A stretch of 64,000 nucleotides of DNA, from NCBI GenBank assembly GCA_021613535.1, contig CP075492.1:13950001-14014000 (forward strand), given 5' to 3'. The position numbers and the translations under genes were made by a program. Shown piece by piece: positions 20,538 to 39,587 of this stretch. The notes under the pieces are model-generated. The model saw only the letters and a program-made list of their open reading frames with translations, made no database searches and was not told the DNA's origin. Positions within the stretch are counted from its first letter, which is position 1, and the number at the start of each line of letters is the position of its first letter. The stretch is from Adineta vaga (Eukaryota > Animalia > Rotifera).

Positions 20538-22765
20538 ATGGCATCGAAAACATCTGTATCAGTGATCATAAAAAGAAGAACGAAAAAACTCAGAAAGCAT
20601 GTACCTATTGTCGATACCAGTCAAGCTCGATCTAATATTGATGTTCTTCGAATGTCTATACATGATCTCGATTGGAAAGAAGTAAGTTACATCGATCATT
20701 TTATCGTATTGAATAATCTCACGTGTTAGTGTATTTCTGGTAATTCTACTAATTTGGATATCTGTTGGAATTCGGCGACATTTCAAGATGGAAATCGAAA
20801 TTACAATTCTATATTAGCAAGGGTGAATAAATTTCCAGGTTTGATATCAAAGATTTATTTTGTATTTTGACTTTTTTCAAAGTTGAATAATGTTTAGGAA
20901 TGAGTGATATGTTGTGTAAAAGTAATTTAACACGTTCATTAAATGCCATGCGTCGATTGTTTCCAGAAGAATTTAATTTCTATCCAAGAACATGGTTTTT
21001 ACCGGAACAACGCGAACAATTTCGAAATGATGCTACTGAAATACATAAAAAAGATCGAAAACGACAACGATCATTAACAACTTTTATTGTTAAACCATCA
21101 GGTTTGTATAGTAGTCATTGTCTCAAAATATTCAATCGTTTCATAATCATATTTTATACAGATGGATCAGAAGGTGCTGGTATCTATTTAATTCAAGATC
21201 CAACACGTTGCAGCGCTATGAATCGACCACATATTGTTCAAGGTAAGATTTACAATTGATCTAAATTCAATATGTTACTTGTGATTTGTTCTATCAGAAT
21301 ATATTGATCGACCATTGCTGATCAATAGACTCAAATTCGATGTACGAATTTATGTTCTGATTCTTCAATTGGATCCATTAGAAATCTTACTGTATGACGA
21401 AGGTTTAGCACGTTTTGCTACTGTTGAATACCAAGCTCCATCAGTTAAAAATCTTCATGAAACATTCATGCATTTAACTAATTATTCATTGAATAAACGT
21501 AGTACAACATATACACATTGTACAGATGAGAGACAAACTGATGCTAGCAAACGAAAATTTAGTCTTGTCTGGTCACAACTCGCTCAATTGTATACTTTGA
21601 ATGAAATTGAGCGAGCAAAAGAGTTGATCAAAGATATGATCAATAAAACAGTTTTGGCTATCTTACCTGAACTTCGTGTTCAATATGCTTTAGAAATGCC
21701 AACGGCTCAAAAGCAGAATCAATGCTTTCAAGTATATACTTCATTGAATTGATTCTAAAATTTGAAAGATACTTTTATAGATCATTGGATTTGATATTCT
21801 TCTGACGGATCGACTAAAACCTATTTTACTTGAAGTTAATGCAAATCCTTCGTTACGAATTGATTATGATCATACCAATGAAGCTGGTAAGAATGATTAT
21901 ATTTATATCAGATAATTGAGTCTTATTCATCGTATAGGTAAATTAATTCATGAACCAAGTCTCATTGATGAAGAAATAAAAAAACCACTGGTTACGGAAA
22001 CATTAAAACTTGTGATGTAAATATATGATAAAATAACTATTTTCTTAGTAAATCTGTTTTAGGAAAGAAAAACAACATCGTTTACAACAAGAAGCAAAGA
22101 ATGCAGATGTGATTCATGGAATTAGAAATATAACTAATCATCAAATTGAACCGGATAGTGAACATGATGCGGAAAGAATGCGTTCCGATTCACAAATAAG
22201 CACGTCTGACTCGTATTCATCGAATTCAGATTTACCTTCTGACATGCTACAAATAATCTATCCATCAACATCGGGAACTGATTATGAACATATGTTTCTT
22301 GTCGAGAAAATTGCTTTTATCTATATCGAATTAGTAATCAAACGTGGATATAAAGCAATGACGAATCGACCATTTCGTCAATTGGGCAGGTAAGTTTCAT
22401 TTATTATTTTCTTGAACATCAACGACGAACAATAAAACTAAACTTTTTCTCGCTCTCGCAATAGTATCTGTGGTATCATTGATCAAGCAACACCGATGTC
22501 AGCTATTGACATTCTTTACGTTCAAATCTTCTCTAAATGTAAACAATATGCTTCACAATCTCCTGCAGTTGGTAAGTTAGAAATGTATATTCCTTACCGT
22601 TTCGATGAATGTAAGGTTTATCTTCTAGGACTTGATTTTTCGGCTTTCATCGAAGCTTTCTTCCTACTATCTCAGCGTAAATATCCAACATGTTCACTTC
22701 TTGATGGTGTTACCGCTATGATCGATTCTTGCAATCATCATTTGCATTTTAATACAGAAAGATAA
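20538..22765 (+). CDS. TTLL11: Tubulin polyglutamylase, TTLL11-like
   Basis: IVDTSQARSNIDVLRMSIHDLDWKE (TTLL11-like N-terminus), VNKFPGM, FYPRTWFLP, FIVKPS-DGSEGAGIYL, KFDVRIYVL, EGLARFAT, MHLTNYSLNK, IIGFDILL...LLEVNANPSL across ~10 exons. Confidence 0.88.
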
Positions 22766-24430: not shown

Positions 24431-26717
24431 TTAATCATATTTGACATGAAATCGTCTAGCTAATGTTAAGTAACTTGAAATCATAAGATATTTTCCTTCT
24501 AATAAAGCTAATTCACCCCATAGATATTTCTTTTTGATTTCTTCTTGATTTTTATGCAAACTATCTAATTGTTCACGTAATCGTTGAATATCAAATAATG
24601 CATCTAATTGATTCATATCATGTGAATGAAAATTATCATAAATGTATTGATAGATTTTCGATTTGGGATTTAATAATGTTGGTGGTGCAAGAAAAGGATG
24701 CTTTTCTCTTTTATAAACTTCATCTGTAATAAATGGTCGACCAGCTTCTTTCAAAACGTATTTTTCAATTAATGAACCATTTTTTAATTTTAATTTTATA
24801 TTAGTTGGTAAACGATTAACATAATCAACAACATAGTGATCAAGAAATGCTAAACGTCCTTCAACTGAATGTGCCATTTCGGATTTATCTCCGTAAACTT
24901 TGAGAAGAACATTAGGAAGAAAATTTTTCATAAACATATATTGACTTGAATGAACACGAGAAATTTCATAATTAATGATTTGTTTGGAAATAAAATAATC
25001 ATAAAGACATGATTGATGAAAATAGAAACTATTCAAACGAAATTTATCGTATTTTTTCTTTAGATTCTCCGAACAAAGACCGTCATAAGCTAAGAATAAT
25101 GATCGTTCTTGAGATGGAAAATAGCCTAATGTTTGAATACAATCAGGTTCACGTTGTTTATCATTAAGAACTGCACTAGCACCTAAAATATTTGATGTTA
25201 ATGATTTCATTACTTGTTCACGTTCTTGATTATTTAATGTTTCATACGTAGAAGAATCATTGGGAAGATCATATAAAAGATAATCTTGTCGAAAAGGTGA
25301 ATAACTAAATAAAAAGGAAAAACAACTTCTTTTTATCGCCTTTAATGAATGAAATTCCACATACCCAGAAAAGATTTCATCACTTCCTTCGCCCGTTAAT
25401 ACAACCTTTCCATTATTAGCTCGAACAGCTTTTGATAAAATATATTTTGCAACTCCACTTATTAATGTCAATGGATATTCTGAATGATAAACACATTCAT
25501 CTATATTTTCAGCTAATTGATCATGTGTTATTTCGAAGATATGTGGAGTTGTTTTATTTATACCAAGATGTTTATTTGTACCAAGACATAAACTTTGTTC
25601 ATCAAAATCAGGATGATCTTTAAATGCAATGGAATATGTATCAATTGATTGATCTGTAAATGTTGTTGCCATGCCTAATAATGTTGATGAATCTAAACCA
25701 CCGGATAAATAAACACCAACTTTTACATCGGCACGCATTCGAAGACGAATAGCATCAAGAAGTTGTTCTTGAACACCGTCAATCATTTCTTCTTCACTTC
25801 GTTGTTCATTGTTTTCTTCTTCACGTGTGATATAAGAAGTTTCATAATATTTTGATAAGTTGATAGTACCATTTGAAGTGGCAGTTAATATATGAGCAGG
25901 TGGAACTTGTTGAATATTTTTATAAACTGTTTGTAAACTACGTAAATGTCCTGAATTATAAATGACTTCTTCATTCCAAATTGCCGGAACACTAAATAAA
26001 ACATGGTTTTAACGAACAAAAAGATCAATCTATTTACCCAAAAGCAAATAATGCTTTAATTTCAGATGCAAATAAAAGTTTATCATCATAGATTGTATAA
26101 TATAATGGCTTGATACCAAAACGATCTCGTACAGCAATAAAAATCTTCAAATACAAACGAATGGGAATAAGAGAATAATATTCGGAAAAAAATCAATAAT
26201 ATACTTTTCGTTCTTCATCATAAAATGTGATTGCAAATTCTCCTCGAAGATATTTAGGAAAATCTAAACCATATTTTCTATATAAATACAATGCAATTTC
26301 GCTATCACTTTCACTAAGAAAATGATATTGATCTTGTTCAATAGCTTGTTTACGAATACGATCATGATCATATAATTCACCATTCATGGATAAATGTAAT
26401 TGTTTATCGTATGAATGTAATGGTTGTCGACCACGATCACTTAAATCTATAATCGATAGACGAGTATGACCAAGACCAACGGTTCTGTCTTCATTTTGCC
26501 ATAAAGATGGTGAACCATCAGGACCACGATGTCTCACAGTGTTCAAACCACGTAATAATGATTGATAATCTTCATCAGAACGAATATAAGATGGTGGTGA
26601 AGTGTAAAAATATGATACAACACCACAATATAATCGCGATGTTGAATGAAATTGTCTATATGTAAACGTGAACAACTTTTTGTTTCGATTTAATTGAATG
26701 AATATACGTGGAATCAT
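24431..26717 (-). CDS. asnB: Asparagine synthetase B-like glutamine amidotransferase with an N-terminal mitochondrial presequence; 3 introns
   Basis: Ntn GATase motifs [37 protein letters not shown]; synthetase motifs [28 protein letters not shown]. Introns at ~26145-26204, ~25993-26037 and 25305-25364. Confidence 0.92.
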
Positions 26718-27106
26718 CGAAAATATATGATCGTATTATGAAGAGAGATGCTTATTGAATTGATTTGAATAGAAAATGAAAAAGAAAGCATTCGTTCGTG
26801 AACATATTGTAAACATCAGTATTGTCAGCGTTCGAACAAAGAAACGAATAATACCAATACCCTCGAAAAGAAGTATGATATCTTCGATGTCGCTATATAT
26901 TCAAATGATATGAACAGTGAAGTATAGCGACCTAGATGAAATATACATTTAAAATATAGAGAAAAGAAAAGACTATTCAATCGTATCGACTATTTAAATT
27001 AGTAGATAAAAAATCATTTGTTGATTAATATTTGTCGAAAAAATATATATATATATATGAAAAACGATAAAACTGATAAGTTTTTTTTTTCATATATTAC
27101 AAGCAG

Positions 27107-28143: not shown

Positions 28144-29958
28144 ATGAGAACTAGTTTGCGGATAGATTCTATACTAAAATCAAATCCGGAACAAACTTAT
28201 ATTGGTGTTTGGATTCACGATGATCATATAATTTCTAATCAACAAAAGCAAATTGAAGTTTATTTAAGTCAACTATTTTATTATTATCAAACGTTTGATA
28301 GTATGGAAAAATTGGCTTCCTATTTCGGTAGAGATCGACATGTTGCCAAGATTTTTTTCATCATATCTATTTCTAACTTATCATCAGTGGCATTAGCTAA
28401 GTTAAGTGAAGAATACTCCAACACGGAGAAGATCTATATCTTTTCACCTCTTATAATATCTGATTCGATGTATTTTATGACAAATGATATTGACAATTTA
28501 TTTGCAAAAATGAAAGAGGATATATTAGCTTTTGTTCAGAAAGCCAATCAGTTACGAATCATTGGAAGAGAAGAAGATCAAGAATTGAGACCTTTTTATA
28601 TATCGCGTATAAATCGAATTTCTACATATATGGACAAGTTTATGCCGGATGATCAGGCAACAGACGATTCGATCAAGGTTTTAAAATTCTTAATGATGAC
28701 TAATATTCTTCTTAATTTAGTTCATGATGATGATGATATACAGGATATGTGGCAAGTTTGTCGTCAGTTTTATCAGAATGATCCTTTGGAACAAAATAAG
28801 ATTGAAGATTTATCAGATCATTATGAACCAAGACATGCTATCTATTGTTATACGAAAAGTTCATCAGTTTTTCGTATTGTTAATGATGCTTGTCGAACTG
28901 AAAATATCCCACGATTGTATGAATTTCGTGTCTATATTAATCACTTACATCAACAAATTGACATACTTAGTAAAACTGAACAAGATGAAGGACATAAATC
29001 TTCGATTCGAAAAGTTTATCGTGGAAGAGTCTTGTCAGAAAGCGTTTTACAACAATTGATTGATAATGAAAAGAAATTAATTTCAATGAATGGTTTTCTT
29101 TCAACAACATTATCACCTCATATTTCCAATATTTACGCTGCGGTTGAAAACACGATTGATGCAGATAAGAGACGTGTGCAGTTTATTCTCACAATTGATA
29201 CAGTTAAACAACCATACGCTTCTATTTCATCACATAGTGCCATAAAAGATGAAGAAGAAGTTCTTTTTTCAATTGGAATTATCTGGCGTATTGATGCTAT
29301 TCGATTTGATGATAATTTATATCAAATAGAATTAACATCTTCTGATTACTTTGATACACAACTGGAAACATTGATGTCAAATTATATAAAAAATGAATGT
29401 AATCTTTCGTCGATCGGTGATATTTTACAAGATCTTGGGAATTATGAAGAAGCAGACTGGTTCTATATGAAAATGTTAAAACAAAATAATCTTTCTAAAC
29501 AAACGTGTGCACATCTATATTATAAGAAAGGAATAATAGAAAAGAAACTCGGACGTAATGGTGTAGCATTTGAATATTTTCAACAAGCAACTGGCTTACT
29601 TAAACCATTAATTCAAAATTCAAATCAATTCAATTCATCTCGAGAAATCTATAAACATGATACAGATTCACTTTTAATTGCAGTATATAATAATATGGCT
29701 CTATTAAATGAGAAAAACTATGCTTTTGATGAAGCATTTAACTGTTACAAACAAGCATTAGAAATATCAAATAGTTCAAAATCAGAATTAGCTATAGTGA
29801 ACAATAATTTGGGCCTTTTTTATTGTCGTTATGGTTCCTATCAACAAGCACGGAAACATTTTGTTATAGCTATTGAATTATCTGAAACTGATTTATTATA
29901 TTGGCCAGAGTTCAAAAGAAACCTTGATCATGTAGAAACTATTTTACGCACTCCATGA
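28144..29958 (+). CDS. NAD+:arginine-type mono-ADP-ribosyltransferase (R-S-E clade) with C-terminal TPR repeats
   Basis: YTK...FRIVNDACR helical region, VYRG (R), GFLSTT (STS motif), DEEEVLF (ExE); TPRs such as IGDILQDLGNYEEA, YNNMALL...AFNCYKQALE and NNNLGLFY...G.YQQA. Confidence 0.9.
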   Translation: MRTSLRIDSILKSNPEQTYIGVWIHDDHIISNQQKQIEVYLSQLFYYYQTFDSMEKLASYFGRDRHVAKIFFIISISNLSSVALAKLSEEYSNTEKIYIFSPLIISDSMYFMTNDIDNLFAKMKEDILAFVQKANQLRIIGREEDQELRPFYISRINRISTYMDKFMPDDQATDDSIKVLKFLMMTNILLNLVHDDDDIQDMWQVCRQFYQNDPLEQNKIEDLSDHYEPRHAIYCYTKSSSVFRIVNDACRTENIPRLYEFRVYINHLHQQIDILSKTEQDEGHKSSIRKVYRGRVLSESVLQQLIDNEKKLISMNGFLSTTLSPHISNIYAAVENTIDADKRRVQFILTIDTVKQPYASISSHSAIKDEEEVLFSIGIIWRIDAIRFDDNLYQIELTSSDYFDTQLETLMSNYIKNECNLSSIGDILQDLGNYEEADWFYMKMLKQNNLSKQTCAHLYYKKGIIEKKLGRNGVAFEYFQQATGLLKPLIQNSNQFNSSREIYKHDTDSLLIAVYNNMALLNEKNYAFDEAFNCYKQALEISNSSKSELAIVNNNLGLFYCRYGSYQQARKHFVIAIELSETDLLYWPEFKRNLDHVETILRTP

Positions 29959-31879: not shown

Positions 31880-32842
31880 ATGGTAATGGATCGATCAAGA
31901 ACTATAACTGCAAATTGTCGTAGTTCCTTTCGAAATTTTATAATTATTGGTTGTAGTTTATTACTTGGTTTTTACATTGGATCTTTCAAAGAAACTGAAC
32001 CAATAACAAAATCTCTCTCATCACCTGCTAATATTATCGATACAACTCAACTAATAACAACGAACATGACATGTGTGAAAACAAAAGAACTCTTTAATTT
32101 ATATAAGTCAACTATTTGTATACATAATAGTGGAGATATTGTTAGTACGACTATTGCTCGTGAACATATTTGGGAAGAAGATTACATAGTTCGTTTATTA
32201 CGTATACTCATTCGAAATCCACATTTAGATATGATTGATATTGGAGGTAATATTGGGAGTTATACGATGTTTACTGCAGGCGCACTCGGTCGTTTTACGA
32301 TTACAATTGATTGTTTCAAGCCAAATATTGAACGAATTGCTCGTGCTGTTCAAATTGAAAATGTTCATAATCGTGCAGTTATTGTGCACAATGCATTATA
32401 TTCAAAATCTGGAGAATATATTAAATTATCGCAGGAAAATCCTTCAGGTTTACAACTTCGAGATGAAACTCAAATGGATTCAACGAATCAATATATTGTT
32501 AAAACGATTCGTTTCGATGATTTACTTCCTATATTAATTCAACGAAATGTTCGTAGCGCAATTATTAAAATTGATATTGAAGGTTCAGAAGTTTATTTAC
32601 TCGAATCAGGAATGAAAGTATTCGAACAAATTGATATTCAATTAGTTATGATGGAATGGGGTCACGGTCTACGAAAGACATATGAAAAGCGTTATGAAAA
32701 AATTGTTCATTATTTCAAAATATGGAATTATATTACAACTGATGTTCAATGTAATGTGTTGGATTCTGAAAATTGGCGAACGTCATGGCCAGGAAATATT
32801 TATTGGATAAAAAAAGTTAATTTTAAACAAAATATTTGCTAA
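31880..32842 (+). CDS. FkbM-family SAM-dependent methyltransferase with an N-terminal membrane anchor; intronless CDS
   Basis: TM segment FIIIGCSLLLGFYIG; motif I MIDIGGNIGSYT; TIRFDDLL; IKIDIEGSE; VMMEW. Confidence 0.88.
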   Translation: MVMDRSRTITANCRSSFRNFIIIGCSLLLGFYIGSFKETEPITKSLSSPANIIDTTQLITTNMTCVKTKELFNLYKSTICIHNSGDIVSTTIAREHIWEEDYIVRLLRILIRNPHLDMIDIGGNIGSYTMFTAGALGRFTITIDCFKPNIERIARAVQIENVHNRAVIVHNALYSKSGEYIKLSQENPSGLQLRDETQMDSTNQYIVKTIRFDDLLPILIQRNVRSAIIKIDIEGSEVYLLESGMKVFEQIDIQLVMMEWGHGLRKTYEKRYEKIVHYFKIWNYITTDVQCNVLDSENWRTSWPGNIYWIKKVNFKQNIC

Positions 32843-33825: not shown

Positions 33826-36800
33826 ATGGTATCATTTGTAAAAAGCATCATTCTTACAATCGTTTTTATCCAAGTATATTTCGTTTATCTTTCATAAAAT
33901 CATACTCATTTAGTTTATTGTTACAGATTATTTCGGCACGCCATCATTTTGATGATGATGATGACGATGATGATGATGATGATGGTGATATTTCAATGCA
34001 TAGTTACAAATTCGATCATCATGAATCTTCATTTCATTCGAACAGAATATCAGGTTGAAGAATAATTTACATTAAAAAAGAATAATTGTTTTTTGTTGAA
34101 TTTAGATGATCTTCGAACGAAATTGACGAATATTCTTTATCCAGGAAATACATTTTCTATTTCTGAACTATCACATACGTTGATCGATAGTAGAAAAAAA
34201 GGAAATTCATATTCTTTTCGATTTCGTCAGGAAATTATGAATTATTTTAATGATCGATTATTCATTGGTGAATTGACACAATTAAAAACAGTGAATAAAG
34301 TAGATGTCTTATTCTATGATCAATCTGATCGACCTGTTTTGGACAAATATGGTGATATAATTCGATATACATCGAATATACATGATTTGGGACATGCTTT
34401 GGAATTAATTCAGTTGGAATTTTCTTTTTCTTCTATTGAATTTCTTTTAAAACTACAACCCGAAGCAACATTTAATAAGCATAATCTTTTCTTCCATTTT
34501 TCACATACATCATCAGGCAGTAAGTAATAAAGAGAAAAATTTGAAAATGAAAAATGTGAATGTTTCTTTTTAGCTGATGTAACAGGAAGAATTATTGGTC
34601 CGACCTTGTATGTTATCGGTTCAAGAAAACCAATGTATACTGTAACGAAAACTTGTCCACTCGGTATAAGATGTGGATGGTTCTTAAATAATGATCTTAT
34701 TTTTAATGGACCAGATACTTCCGTTGCATTAGATTGTAATGAAAACCATATTGGTAATCCCATATTATCTTATGTGAGCATTACTAATGGTATTACACAA
34801 ATATTAGCTTCACTTACCATTCGTATTACCTTTCGTCGAGAACAAAGTAAATTATCTTTAAATTTACTTCAGTGAAAAAATCTTCCTAGCTCGTGAACTG
34901 AATAATATATGGTTATTTTTTTTCTTGTGAAGGTTATTCTTCAGCAGAAAAGTACTACGAATAATCACGTAAACAAATATAGTTCAGTTGAATAGACAAT
35001 ATCGAACCATATAATGTATTTTTTATTGTTGTTTTCTGAAGTCAGAAACGTTGAGTATGACTGCTATGTGCAGGCATATCTAGATGACTGCAAAGAGGTT
35101 CTCGAAGTGTGGTCCCTTTCCTTCGCCATCTGAGATAAAGTTCCTAGTATTATTTCATACTATTATAGCATATTGTGTTAACCTATCATCTGTCCCTGCT
35201 CTACATTTATTATTACAAAACTAGAAACCAAACCGTATTAATTCATATTAGATTTTGTTGCGTGTTTGTGCTTAAAAATATATATTTTGTTAAACACAAC
35301 ACATTTGTCATAAATTCTCAGTTACTGAATGAATAATTTAAATACAGCATTCTGAAATATGTTCTAGAATAAACTCTCCTTTCATCCGTTCATTTTTACA
35401 TCACTCAGACTTTGAATCTTCCACTATAAAAAGTTCACTTTTCTATTTGAATCTTTGATTAGGACGTACGACCTCAACAACAACCATCATGCCTTCTACA
35501 GATCGTTCTACCGTAATGGCAACCAGCTCTTCTATGAATTCACTACAAACCACGATTGAAGAGACCATCACAACAGCTCAAACCACAACCGCACATAAAC
35601 AGTCAGAACCCTCATCTGAAATTACTAGTGCAACGTCAACAACGACTAGGGTCTCTGAATACACGAGCACCATCGAAGAGTCTATGCCACCGTCACAATA
35701 CAGTACCATAATGGATGAGTTCACAACGACTACAGAACCTACCAATACAGCATATGAATCAACCGCTACCCTTGAATATACAACTACAATTCGAGAGCAT
35801 ACCACTCAGGTGGAATCAATCACTACAATGGCAGAATCTACAACATCTCCAAAATATACTAAAAGCACTGAGGGATCTACGACACAGTCCGAACACAGCA
35901 GTATCACCGAAAAAGTCAATACCATCAATGAACCTAGCAATGCTACAGAAAAACCAGCCGACTCTTCACAACCTACGGATACGTACAAGGAATCTTCCTT
36001 ATCGTCACCCCCAACAATGCAAACGACAGAGTTGACCGGAAAAAGCGAAATGACAGATTCAACAAAGCAATCAACAAATGCCTCAGGACATAAAACTACA
36101 AGTGAAGGTGAAAGTACACTGCTCGAATACAGTAGTACTACCAACGAGCACATCTCGATCAACGAAGCTAGTAGCACAATTGAAGAACTATATACAACAT
36201 TGACAGCGACGTCCACACCCTCACGACCACAAATCACCAAAACAACAATGGAAACCATCACTGTCACTACAGACACTACTGAAACTACTACCACTACTGA
36301 TACTACCATGACTACAACGGAAACTACCACCACAACTGAAACTACCACGACTCCAACGGAAACTATTACCACTGAAACTACCACTACTCCAAAGGAAATT
36401 ACCACCACTGAAACTACTACCACTACTGATACGAACACGACTCCAAGGGAAACTATCACCACAACTGAAACTACCATGACTACAACGGAAACTACCACCA
36501 CTGAAGCTAACACGACTCCAAGGGAAAGTACCACCACAACTGAAACTACCACCACTGAAGTTAACACGAATCCAAGAGAAACTACCACCACCGAAACTAA
36601 CACGATGGAAACTACTACCACTACTGATACAAACACGACCCCAACGGAAACTGCCACCACCGAAACTAAGACGACGGAAACTACTACCACTGAAGTTAAC
36701 ACGACTCCAAGGGAAACTATCACCACAACTGAAACTACCATGACTACAACGGAAAGTACCGCCACAACTGAAACTACCATGACTACAACGGAAACTACCA

Positions 36801-39587
36801 CCACTGAAGTTAACACGACTCCAAGGGAAAGTACCACCACAACTGAAACTACCATGACTACAACGGAAACTACCATGACTACAACGGAAACTACCACCAC
36901 TGAAGTTAACACGACTCCAAGGGAAAGTACCACCACAACTGAAACTACCATGACTACAACGGAAACTACCACCACTGAAGTTAACACGACTCCAAGGGAA
37001 AGTACCACCACAACTGAAACTACCATGACTACAACGGAAACTACCATGACTACAACGGAAACTACCACCACTGAAGTTAACACGACTCCAAGGGAAAGTA
37101 CCACCACAACTGAAACTACCATGACTACAACGGAAACTACCATGACTACAACGGAAACTACCATGACTACAACGGAAACTACCACCACTGAAGTTAACAC
37201 GACTCCAAGGGAAACTATCACCACCGAAACTAACACGATGGAAACTACTACCACTACTGATACTACCACCACTCCAACGGAAAATACCATCACTGAAACT
37301 AACACGACCCCAAGGGAAGCTACCACCACAACTGAAAATACCATGACTACAACGGAAACTACCACCACTGAAGTTAACACGACCCCAAGGGAAACTATCA
37401 CCACTGAGACTACTACTACGACTCCAATGGAAACTGCCACCACCGAAACTAAGACGACGGAAACTACTACCACTGAAGCTAACACGACTCCAAGGAAAAG
37501 TACCACCACTGAAACTATTATGACTACAACGGAAACCAGCACCACTGAAACCACCAATACGACGATAGATAGTACTTCAACAACAACAACGGAAACTACT
37601 ACTGAAACCACTACTGAAGCCATCACTACGACCACAGATATTACTTCAACAACAACGGAAACTACTACAACCACTACAGAAACTACAACAACAGTAACTA
37701 GCACGACTATAACTTGGACTACAACGACATTCACTTCGACAACAAGTAATAGTAAGTGTAGAAGACTTGTTTCATACTTTGTAGCGTAGTAGTTATGTGG
37801 TCGGTGAAATATATAGGAGAGTTAATTGTTCTTACTGCAAAATAGGGAAGAAATGCTAGAGAGTGAGCTGCATTCTGATTGAAAAGAGAATATAATTTCT
37901 ATGATGTTCCTTGTATTTGATGGATTATACATCGAATAAACCGAAAAGCTTTGTTGATATATGAACGCACTCACAGTATGATAGTTTTGCGGAAGTAGAC
38001 TGTTATGATATGATTAGGTTTAGAAAGAACAAAACAGATGTAAATTTGATGAGATTTAGATTAACTTTGTATTTGATGGTAGTTCTAGAAGGATGATATT
38101 GATTGTAATGATCTCTGATATTTATCAGTATAGTAGTAGCAGATTCATTCTCTCTCACAACTGGCTGAGACAATTAATTATTTCACGTTTTCTCTTGTCG
38201 TTATTGTGTTTTTAGTCGAAAAATATAGAGTTGGCAATGAATGTTCAGAAGATAAGATACACTAAGTTTATCAGAATAACTTTGACGTTATATTTCGCGT
38301 TGTTCAATAATAGTTGAGGAATAATTTTCGTTAGAGATTACAAGTGTTGGTTCTTGAAAAAAACTGAGTAACAGTGTCTAATTAGCATTCAGCTTATACT
38401 GTGGATAAATCGAAATTGGCAGCTCTAAAATAATTGTTATCATGGAAATGTTTCTTACGTATTGCAAGAAATTGTGCGAGTTCGTTTCTATGCTCATTCT
38501 CTATGGAACATTTAATATGCATCATTGAATTTCAGGAGTTTGCAGATTGTTAAGACTCGGTCAAGGTCGCTTTCTTATGTGGATGACCTTCAATCGAATA
38601 GATCAACGAACGAGGGCATTCTTACATAAGATTGAAACAGATTATCTCGTAAAGCATCAGAGAAGATCATTAAGTTATCGATGAATCTCATCCTATGTGT
38701 ATTTATTAATTCATTCATTGCATCTACTGTATATTTTTCTAGAAAAAAATCAAGTGAGAATATCAAGTGGAATGAATATGATATAAATATGAAGAAAAGA
38801 AATGAGAAGTATAGCACGTCATACTTGCAGAAACTACTGCTGAATCATTGCCAGTACGGATAAGATTGAGGATCGTGTTTTCGAAAGGAAAGAATAATAC
38901 TGAACATTTTTTTTTATAGTATGTTCTTTGAGCAGCATTGAGAACGGTGGCTTTGAATCTGGTAATTCCAATGATTGGATAGTTGGCGGTGGAGATAGAA
39001 GTTTAATTTCATCATTTGACATTCAACTAGAAGAGTATCTACCAGGTGGTGCACGTTATGAGTTATCTATTGCTCTAAATCATTCCGAAATTGTTGTATC
39101 TGGTGGGGATCCGATTTACTCAAATATGTTACCAATGATCGTGTTCAGTGGTACTTATGCGTGGCGTGTTGGAAATGTTGAATCAGGTGGACATGTATCA
39201 GTAATTAGTCGTCAAATTAATAATTACTATTGTTCGGACATCTATTTTGCATGGTTAGCACTATTAGCAAGTGGAAGTCATAGTGAAAGTAACTCTAGCA
39301 TGATGATAATTGAGTTGAAAGATGCAACTATTGGAGTCCTATTACTTTCACGTCGTTTCGATTCCAGAAAAGATGAGGGCGGTGTTGATGGCCGTTTTAA
39401 TTATAAAGATTTAATTTTTTATACACGTGATTGGCAAGTCGAACATGTAACTATCAACGAGACCCATATCGGCCATAATTTCACTTTAACTGTTCTATCA
39501 GCAGACTGTCGAGAGGAAAATCATGCCGGTTACGTTTATATTGATAGTTTTGGTAGTGATATGCCCATTCCAACAATGATCACATAA
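33826..39587 (+). CDS. Secreted mucin-like protein: signal peptide, poly-Asp, unassigned globular region, ~760-aa Thr-rich stalk, C-terminal bacterial-like domain paralogous to 14578-15227
   Basis: Exons: 33826 MVSFVKSIILTIVFIQ | IISARHHFDDDDDDDDDDDG... | ~34106-34519 | ~34574-34846 | 35463-37751 (Thr-rich) | 38920-39587 (NGGFESG...YFAWLALL...ADC...HAGYVYIDSFG). Splice phases are compatible throughout. Confidence 0.85.
36240..37750 (+). repeat. Hierarchical mucin tandem repeat (~75-nt unit TETTMTTTETTTTEVNTTPRESTTT with a 21-nt ETTMTTT sub-repeat)
   Basis: Repeated gaaactaccatgactacaacg and actgaagttaacacgactccaagggaaag. Confidence 0.95.

Follow-up and report, generated by a model that had tools for sequence, protein, structure and literature searches.

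A candidate import-activated AsnB-type amidotransferase with a conserved presequence-like leader in the bdelloid rotifer Adineta vaga

Gene structure and catalytic domains of I4U23_015320

In this work, we analysed a window of 64,000 nucleotides from the genome of Adineta vaga (C3:13,950,001-14,014,000), in which the gene I4U23_015320, read on the minus strand, encodes an AsnB-type amidotransferase bearing a 30-residue leader in front of its catalytic Cys. All the positions given below are those of the window and, for this gene, refer to its minus strand. The gene comprises four exons and three introns with a total of 706 codons, and its exons taken together match the public model (P0001) in length. 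The family searches were done exon by exon, whereas the whole-protein steps were performed on the public annotated protein P0001. Two further intact copies of the gene are present in the A. vaga genome at C3:15,096,004-15,098,188 (L002/L008/L009) and C3:18,198,272-18,200,527 (L003/L006), 1.1 and 4.2 Mb away. These paralogs share 74-82% identity in the N-terminal domain, with the leader length and the position of the first intron unchanged, and they are dispersed duplicates, not partner-chromosome copies.

The ATG at 26717 is the first start codon downstream of an in-frame TAA (26736..26738), which lies seven codons 5′ of it and limits any extension of the reading frame. The next Met is residue 111, well beyond the catalytic Cys31 and just before the N-G-E oxyanion motif. 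Inspection of the sequence revealed no AG dinucleotide before the TGT of Cys31; because of this, and because of the in-frame TAA seven codons upstream, neither splicing nor an upstream start can place Met directly before Cys. Splicing of that kind, which would have contradicted the reading in the initial annotation, is thereby excluded.

Exon 1 (26205..26717; 171 codons, phase 0) carries the predicted presequence and most of the glutaminase domain, recognised by both GATase_6 (E 5e-23) and GATase_7 (E 1e-20), and its end is identical in both A. vaga paralogs. It is followed by intron 1 (26145..26204; 60 nt, GT-AG), across which the GATase_7 profile resumes from position 87 to position 90, and by exon 2 (26038..26144; 107 nt), which encodes the end of the glutaminase domain (GATase_7 positions 90-122, E 2.5e-10). 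Intron 2 (25992..26037; 46 nt, GT-AG) is supported by the agreement of the exon sum with the 706-residue public model. Exon 3 (25365..25991) comprises a linker and the first half of the synthetase domain with the PP-loop motif SGGLDS at 25705-25688, and it could be aligned to PDB 1CT9 and 6GQ3. The second half of the synthetase domain and a C-terminal tail are encoded by exon 4 (24431..25304), which ends with the stop codon at 24433-24431. On exons 3-4, PF00733 scored 217 bits against a cut-off of 21 (E 8.5e-64).

Intron 3 (25305..25364; 60 nt, GT-AG) is in frame and stop-free, and its read-through is a trap for annotation based on open reading frames. We considered it as a coding sequence, since the read-through 'GYVEFH' aligns to GY(L/I)YFH of the E. 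coli and human asparagine synthetases, and rejected this, judging the likeness to be a coincidence of the GT-ATG-T donor. The intron is real because the paralog L002 has a stop codon in the equivalent stretch, the 706-residue public model removes it, and the homologs run from GY to P/S-x-F-R without the residues of intron 3.

P0001 scored 382 bits with NCBIfam TIGR01536 'asparagine synthase (glutamine-hydrolyzing)', above the cut-off of 267.1, and remained below the cut-offs of AsnB proper (NF006949/PRK09431; 275.5 vs. 499 bits), the EPS/PEP-CTERM amidotransferase TIGR03108 (264.6 vs. 816.9), the N-acetylglutaminylglutamine amidotransferase TIGR03104 (275 vs. 570.1) and the lasso-peptide cyclase NF033535 (193.6 vs. 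525). The TIGR01536 score and the gene model uphold the description of this gene in the initial annotation as a long AsnB of microbial type with three introns. C31-G32, H63-R64-G65-P66, N112, E114 and D138-S139-E140 are invariant across 28 aligned homologs, with G113 kept in at least 90% of them, and the adenylating-site motifs SGGLDS and GEGSDE are both present.

The glutaminase half thus has the residues of a class II (N-terminal nucleophile, Ntn) amidotransferase. In enzymes of this class, the free alpha-amino group of Cys1 serves as the general base. The TGT of Cys31 lies at 26625..26627, and this residue, the nucleophile of the domain, aligns to position 1 of TIGR01536 and to position 2 of TIGR03108; it would become the actual N-terminus only upon removal of the leader. 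In the homologs P0041 and P0175, profile position 1 is likewise the first residue after each extension. The asparagine synthase family includes paralogs with other amidation substrates; here, the substrate would most likely be aspartate and the product asparagine.

A comparison with known enzymes delineates the position of the rotifer protein. E. coli AsnB (PDB 1CT9) and human ASNS (PDB 6GQ3) share with it the Ntn glutaminase and PP-loop synthetase domains, the motifs SGGLDS and GEGSDE and an N-terminal Cys-Gly. However, the match is remote (E 3e-17 on the synthetase half), the rotifer enzyme is about 120 residues longer even after leader removal, and the canonical enzymes start with MCG and are cytosolic, in contrast to the rotifer protein with its 30-residue leader. 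The long bacterial members of TIGR01536 (about 640 residues; cyanobacteria, gammaproteobacteria, myxobacteria) belong to the same length class, contain the same motifs and show 34-38% identity to the rotifer enzyme over the synthetase half, yet they start with MCG, bear no leader and lie across a 100/100 branch from the eukaryotic members. The homologs from Mucoromycota and Basidiobolus (Rhizopus, Mucor, Apophysomyces and others) have an insert of about eight residues in common with the rotifers, but they also start with MCG, have no presequence and are presumably cytosolic.

A conserved leader ending at the catalytic cysteine

The 30-codon extension (26717-26628) contains six Lys/Arg, five Ser/Thr and no Asp/Glu residues, which results in a net charge of +6, and it ends directly at Cys31-Gly32 (TGT-GGT). 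The sequence and the alignment to profile position 1 confirm what had initially been noticed here, namely an acid-free extension of 30 residues rich in Lys, Arg, Ser and Thr that abuts the Ntn Cys-Gly. Its interpretation as a cleavable, mitochondrial-looking presequence, the loss of which would leave the Ntn Cys free, is likewise supported. Presequences with Arg at position -10 (R-10) are textbook knowledge. The consecutive action of the mitochondrial processing peptidase (MPP) and Oct1/MIP follows the motif RX↓(F/L/I)XX(T/S/G)XXXX↓, where Arg at -10 and Phe at -8 are the commonest and Lys at -10 is tolerated (PMC3128517). In A. vaga, R21-Q-F23-H-S-T26-S-R-L-Y30 followed by C31 fits the pattern R-X↓(F/L/I)-X-X-(T/S/G)-X-X-X-X↓ right before the predicted mature end. 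Codons 1-22 (M1-Q22; 26652..26717) would represent the basic part without acidic residues that serves targeting and is cut off by MPP, R21 being at -2 relative to the MPP site and at -10 relative to the mature end, and codons 23-30 (F23-Y30; 26628..26651) the predicted octapeptide removed by Oct1/MIP, in which F occupies -8 and T -5. The leader thus resembles the R-10 substrates of Oct1/MIP (MIPEP) in R-10, F-8, S/T-5 and the preceding basic, acid-free segment.

The same arrangement was found in the relatives. The leaders of the two A. vaga paralogs are exactly 30 residues long and have R-10, F-8, H-7, T-5, S-4 and L-2. In A. ricciae, Rotaria sp. and P0009 (a rotifer-like ENA sequence), the leaders comprise 32, 26 and 27 residues, respectively, and the last ten positions are alike; in Rotaria, the ATG is preceded, at a distance of two codons, by an in-frame stop. 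Among the rotifer orthologs of the leader-bearing gene, none was found to lack the extension or its spacing. Leaders of 22-45 residues ending at Cys are also present in eight non-rotifer eukaryotic homologs (P0041, P0121, P0117, P0175, P0202, P0203, P0204 and Naegleria lovaniensis). When the 14 extension-bearing homologs, i.e., three A. vaga copies, three other rotifers and these eight eukaryotes, were anchored on Cys, Phe occupied position -8 in all 14 and Arg or Lys position -10 in 12 of them, the exceptions being P0009 and N. lovaniensis. Positions -6 and -5 are mainly Ser/Thr, positions -1 to -4 are variable, and in most lineages the extension begins with M-(L/I/F)-x-R.

The combination of R/K at -10 with F at -8 was reached by only 1-3% of composition-kept shuffles per sequence (p 0.01-0.03), and it recurs in no fewer than four deep lineages, between which the leaders cannot otherwise be aligned: the rotifers; P0041/P0121; P0175 together with P0202, P0203 and P0204; and P0117. 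The conservation of R-10, F-8, T/S-5 and the spacing to Cys in the paralogs, in other bdelloids and in distant eukaryotes speaks in favour of the R-10 route proposed in the initial annotation, with an MPP cut after Q22 and subsequent removal of an octapeptide. In a fifth eukaryotic lineage, represented by P0014 (L024), the leader is 18 residues long, Arg stands at -2 and the junction reads Cys-Cys-Gly. This arrangement resembles a site for direct cleavage by MPP, another solution to the same problem in place of the octapeptide route.

The three A. vaga copies allow the constraint on the leader to be seen at the level of codons. Codons 21-30 are conserved with synonymous changes, while codons 1-20 are nearly all replaced but remain open, equal in length and basic; the 120 nt upstream show 27-31% identity between the copies, no better than a random alignment. 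This substitution pattern indicates that codons 21-30 are under purifying selection and that codons 1-20 diverge fast yet are kept open. Fast divergence with conserved length and frame is typical of presequence evolution. When residues 1-215 were modelled with AlphaFold2 from an alignment of 28 homologs, the predicted local distance difference test score (pLDDT) was about 50 for residues 1-30, and high confidence began with the strand 32-38, the first of the Ntn fold.

Proposed activation upon import and competing explanations

Taken together, these data suggest that I4U23_015320 probably encodes a mitochondrial AsnB-type amidotransferase that is inactive as a precursor and activated by import, the leader being shared with its closest eukaryotic relatives. 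Prior to processing, the precursor would be unable to hydrolyse glutamine. Residues 1-30 would act as a mitochondrial matrix presequence, and the protein would be imported. MPP would then cut between Q22 and F23, with R21 at -2, and Oct1/MIP would take off the octapeptide F23-Y30. Since Oct1 measures off eight residues starting at the site of MPP cleavage, its action would yield an exact end at Cys, thereby exposing the free alpha-amino group of Cys31 and switching the glutaminase on. The ammonia released would pass to the PP-loop synthetase domain, which most likely adenylates aspartate to make asparagine. An older proposal quoted in PMC3128517, by which octapeptides set the MPP site apart from mature N-termini that MPP cannot handle, gives a rationale for the use of the octapeptide route across the clade.

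Should this mechanism be correct, Oct1/MIP would gain a clear catalytic role, as class II amidotransferases are inactive until Cys is the first residue. The purpose of Oct1 has been debated since its discovery, and stabilisation is the current view: with substrates known so far, the second cleavage is regarded as stabilising, as it removes a destabilising N-terminal residue (PMC3128517), whereas in the rotifer case it would at the same time generate the catalytic nucleophile. Oct1 cleavage would then, for the first time, be required for catalysis and not merely for stability. In addition, an animal that has retained a cytosolic ASNS would carry out asparagine synthesis or another amidation within its mitochondria. 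Neither the exposure of a masked catalytic Cys by proteolysis, known for GPRATase and also for plastid glutamate synthases, nor R-10 presequences are novel as such. In the literature searched, no AsnB-type enzyme appeared among the reported Oct1 substrates, full-text searches for a mitochondrial asparagine synthetase or an asparagine synthetase with a mitochondrial presequence yielded nothing relevant, and asparagine synthase is not mentioned in the mitochondrial proteome papers for Naegleria and Andalucia.

Several observations weigh against activation by import. As regards the motif, position -10 is His in P0009 (whose Arg is at -11) and Ser in N. lovaniensis. The maximal hydrophobic moment of the leader lies above the shuffled mean, but it was reached by 16% of shuffles and hence is not significant. 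The loop equivalent to T322/T323/R325 of E. coli AsnB, which we take to be involved in aspartyl-AMP formation, is not conserved. Exact-protein look-ups for the leader-bearing proteins matched genomic records only. As for the peptidase, Pfam revealed two M3 peptidase genes in the A. vaga genome, whose presence speaks for the mechanism and one of which is a candidate MIPEP; the gene at C2:3.057 Mb is no closer to thimet oligopeptidase/neurolysin than to Dcp, and neither could be named as MIPEP from the protein atlas and PDB searches, which gave generic M3 matches. Two A. vaga MDH2-like genes proved uninformative for the Oct1 motif: their first exon ends with R-Y-A-S-S/T, without F at -8. Finally, a masked Cys may be exposed in another way. 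GPRATase, a class II amidotransferase too, has its catalytic Cys masked in the primary product, exposed by proteolysis, and sheds short propeptides autocatalytically, so that proteolysis by Oct1 is not strictly needed for Cys exposure (PMC7056826).

This last point underlies the main competing explanation, according to which the Ntn domain autocatalytically removes the extension, or no less than its last eight residues, as a propeptide, in the manner of GPRATase/PurF, with no role for Oct1 and with targeting incidental or absent. The common Ntn fold class is consistent with such a scenario, which we nevertheless consider unlikely, as the sampled AsnB relatives that start with MCG have no propeptide, the extension is basic and acid-free, and its invariant F-8 together with R/K-10 corresponds to the MPP/Oct1 rule. 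Furthermore, the conserved sites are not next to the scissile bond, where positions -1 to -4 vary. GPRATase itself differs from the rotifer enzyme in that its last step is autocatalytic and its plant transit peptide is plastidial, whereas the rotifer leader follows the mitochondrial rule. Another way to the same mature end, the R-3 route, had been put forward initially alongside the R-10 one: MPP would cut after R28-L29, and Icp55 would remove Y30. R28-L29-Y30 in this copy does fit R-X-(Y/F/L) directly before the mature end, but Q occupies position -3 in both A. vaga paralog 3 and Rotaria, P0009 has P there, the other lineages show I, F, K, V, H or L, and Y at -1 is found in this copy only. 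The R-3 route is thus not sustained by the homologs and appears decidedly improbable.

It is very improbable that the extension is untranslated as annotated or that the protein stays unprocessed, which would give a blocked glutaminase and leave an extramitochondrial ammonia-dependent synthetase or a non-enzyme. The matches to genomic records only, mentioned above, would agree with this, whereas the lack of an alternative start between the ATG and Cys, the conservation of frame, length and motif in six rotifer genes with unalignable upstream DNA, and the retention of all the glutaminase catalytic residues argue against it. Targeting to another compartment, by a PTS2-like peroxisomal nonapeptide or a secretory signal, seems scarcely credible. 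The PTS2 pattern is R-(L/V/I/Q)-x5-(H/Q)-(L/A). It is loosely resembled by R-x6-Q-L in paralog 3 and Rotaria; however, position 2 of the nonapeptide, and mostly also position 8, is a misfit in every rotifer copy, and none of the non-rotifer lineages matches the pattern. A secretory signal is contradicted by the lack of an uninterrupted hydrophobic core, so both readings were rejected on the motif table. Mitochondrial import followed by MPP and Oct1/MIP processing is therefore the explanation that we retain, with the qualifications listed above.

Relatives, origin and genomic setting

Outside rotifers, the identity over the synthetase half falls to about 35-40%, and the more distant relatives fall into three sets: bacterial proteins of about 640 residues, proteins of Mucoromycota and Basidiobolus, and proteins from eukaryotic environmental contigs. 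The bacterial and Mucoromycota/Basidiobolus homologs start with MCG. The contigs carrying P0041, P0117 and P0175 are eukaryotic, as follows from the neighbouring genes: P0041 adjoins a gene of the MOCS3/Uba4 type, and G-alpha, Zn-cluster and P450 genes are found around P0117 and P0175. Of the named sequences, Naegleria proteins are closest to P0175.

A tree was built with IQ-TREE under LG+C20 with posterior mean site frequencies (PMSF) from 63 sequences aligned over 667 columns; it is subject to warnings about long branches and composition. The branch that separates all the bacterial sequences from all the eukaryotic ones has a support of 100/100. The rotifers group with P0041/P0121 (91/91), and this group is sister to a clade of MCG-starting sequences from Mucoromycota, Basidiobolus and Adineta steineri (91/94); the remaining leader-bearing sequences (Naegleria, the P0175 group and P0117) make up another eukaryotic group. 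The leaders of P0041/P0121 have F-8, H-7, T-5 and L-2 in common with those of the rotifers. The insert of about eight residues, located after GEGSDE..GY, is present in rotifers, Mucoromycota, Basidiobolus and A. steineri and absent from P0041/P0121 and bacteria. Such a distribution is in some tension with the 91/91 support for joining rotifers and P0041/P0121.

With the root placed on the bacterial branch, the leader would have been gained once, at the root of the eukaryotic clade, and then lost in the fungal group, or gained twice, the two scenarios requiring equally few changes; in either of them, the rotifer leader would have the same origin as that of P0041/P0121. The initial annotation suggested that a bacterial or fungal enzyme had been retargeted to mitochondria in rotifers. 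This is not supported, because the nearest non-rotifer relatives, P0041/P0121, already have the leader, as does the second eukaryotic group. Most likely, judging from the tree and the leader motifs, the leader came along with the gene and was not invented in rotifers. No homolog from a non-rotifer animal was found in word searches, which were not exhaustive, and this absence fits an acquisition by the bdelloid ancestor.

A wider proposal, which the sequences allow us to advance only tentatively, is that these proteins form a hitherto undescribed clade of mitochondrial long-form AsnB amidotransferases spread over bdelloids, Naegleria-related amoebae and several uncultured lineages. The octapeptide might serve there as a ruler to Cys and import as an obligatory zymogen activation, and the gene might have been passed to bdelloids by another eukaryote together with an intact targeting signal. 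The case would show that a gene that has probably moved between eukaryotes can bring a working organelle address with it, which is relevant to the domestication of foreign genes in bdelloid rotifers.

Rotifers also possess a second kind of AsnB-like protein. P0167 (Adineta steineri) and P0187 start with MCG and group with Basidiobolus (91/86), and a PF00733 scan of the A. vaga genome revealed no counterpart of this type. It may represent a separate acquisition of the fungal type. Among the bacterial homologs, the genomic context showed no polysaccharide cluster. In Nostoc sp. CENA543 (L026), the gene for P0084 immediately follows one for a class II aminoacyl-tRNA synthetase (tRNA_anti-codon + tRNA-synt_2), a faint hint that the AsnB subfamily of P0084 could have a housekeeping role in amino-acid metabolism.

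The A. vaga genome retains a canonical multi-exon ASNS at C6:11.009 Mb, starting with MCGIW, and the three leader-bearing genes are therefore extra to it. Neither a biosynthetic cluster nor FAS or CYP4 genes were found among the neighbours of the copy in the window. The region 35489-37789 differs from the rest of the window in its composition (GC 0.43 vs. about 0.30 elsewhere, AT skew +0.41, GC skew -0.30); it contains long open reading frames on both strands (766 residues on the plus strand, 642 on the minus strand) with no Pfam match and is probably low-complexity or repeat-coding. A single-exon reading frame of 604 residues at 28144-29958 (plus strand), head-to-head with the neighbouring minus-strand gene, has a weak match to ART (NAD:arginine ADP-ribosyltransferase; E 1e-3, below the cut-off) followed by TPR repeats. 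Further on the plus strand, the reading frame at 31880-32842 encodes an FkbM-type methyltransferase domain (E 7e-9), and 21315-21752 corresponds to an exon of a gene of the tubulin-tyrosine-ligase family (E 2e-28).

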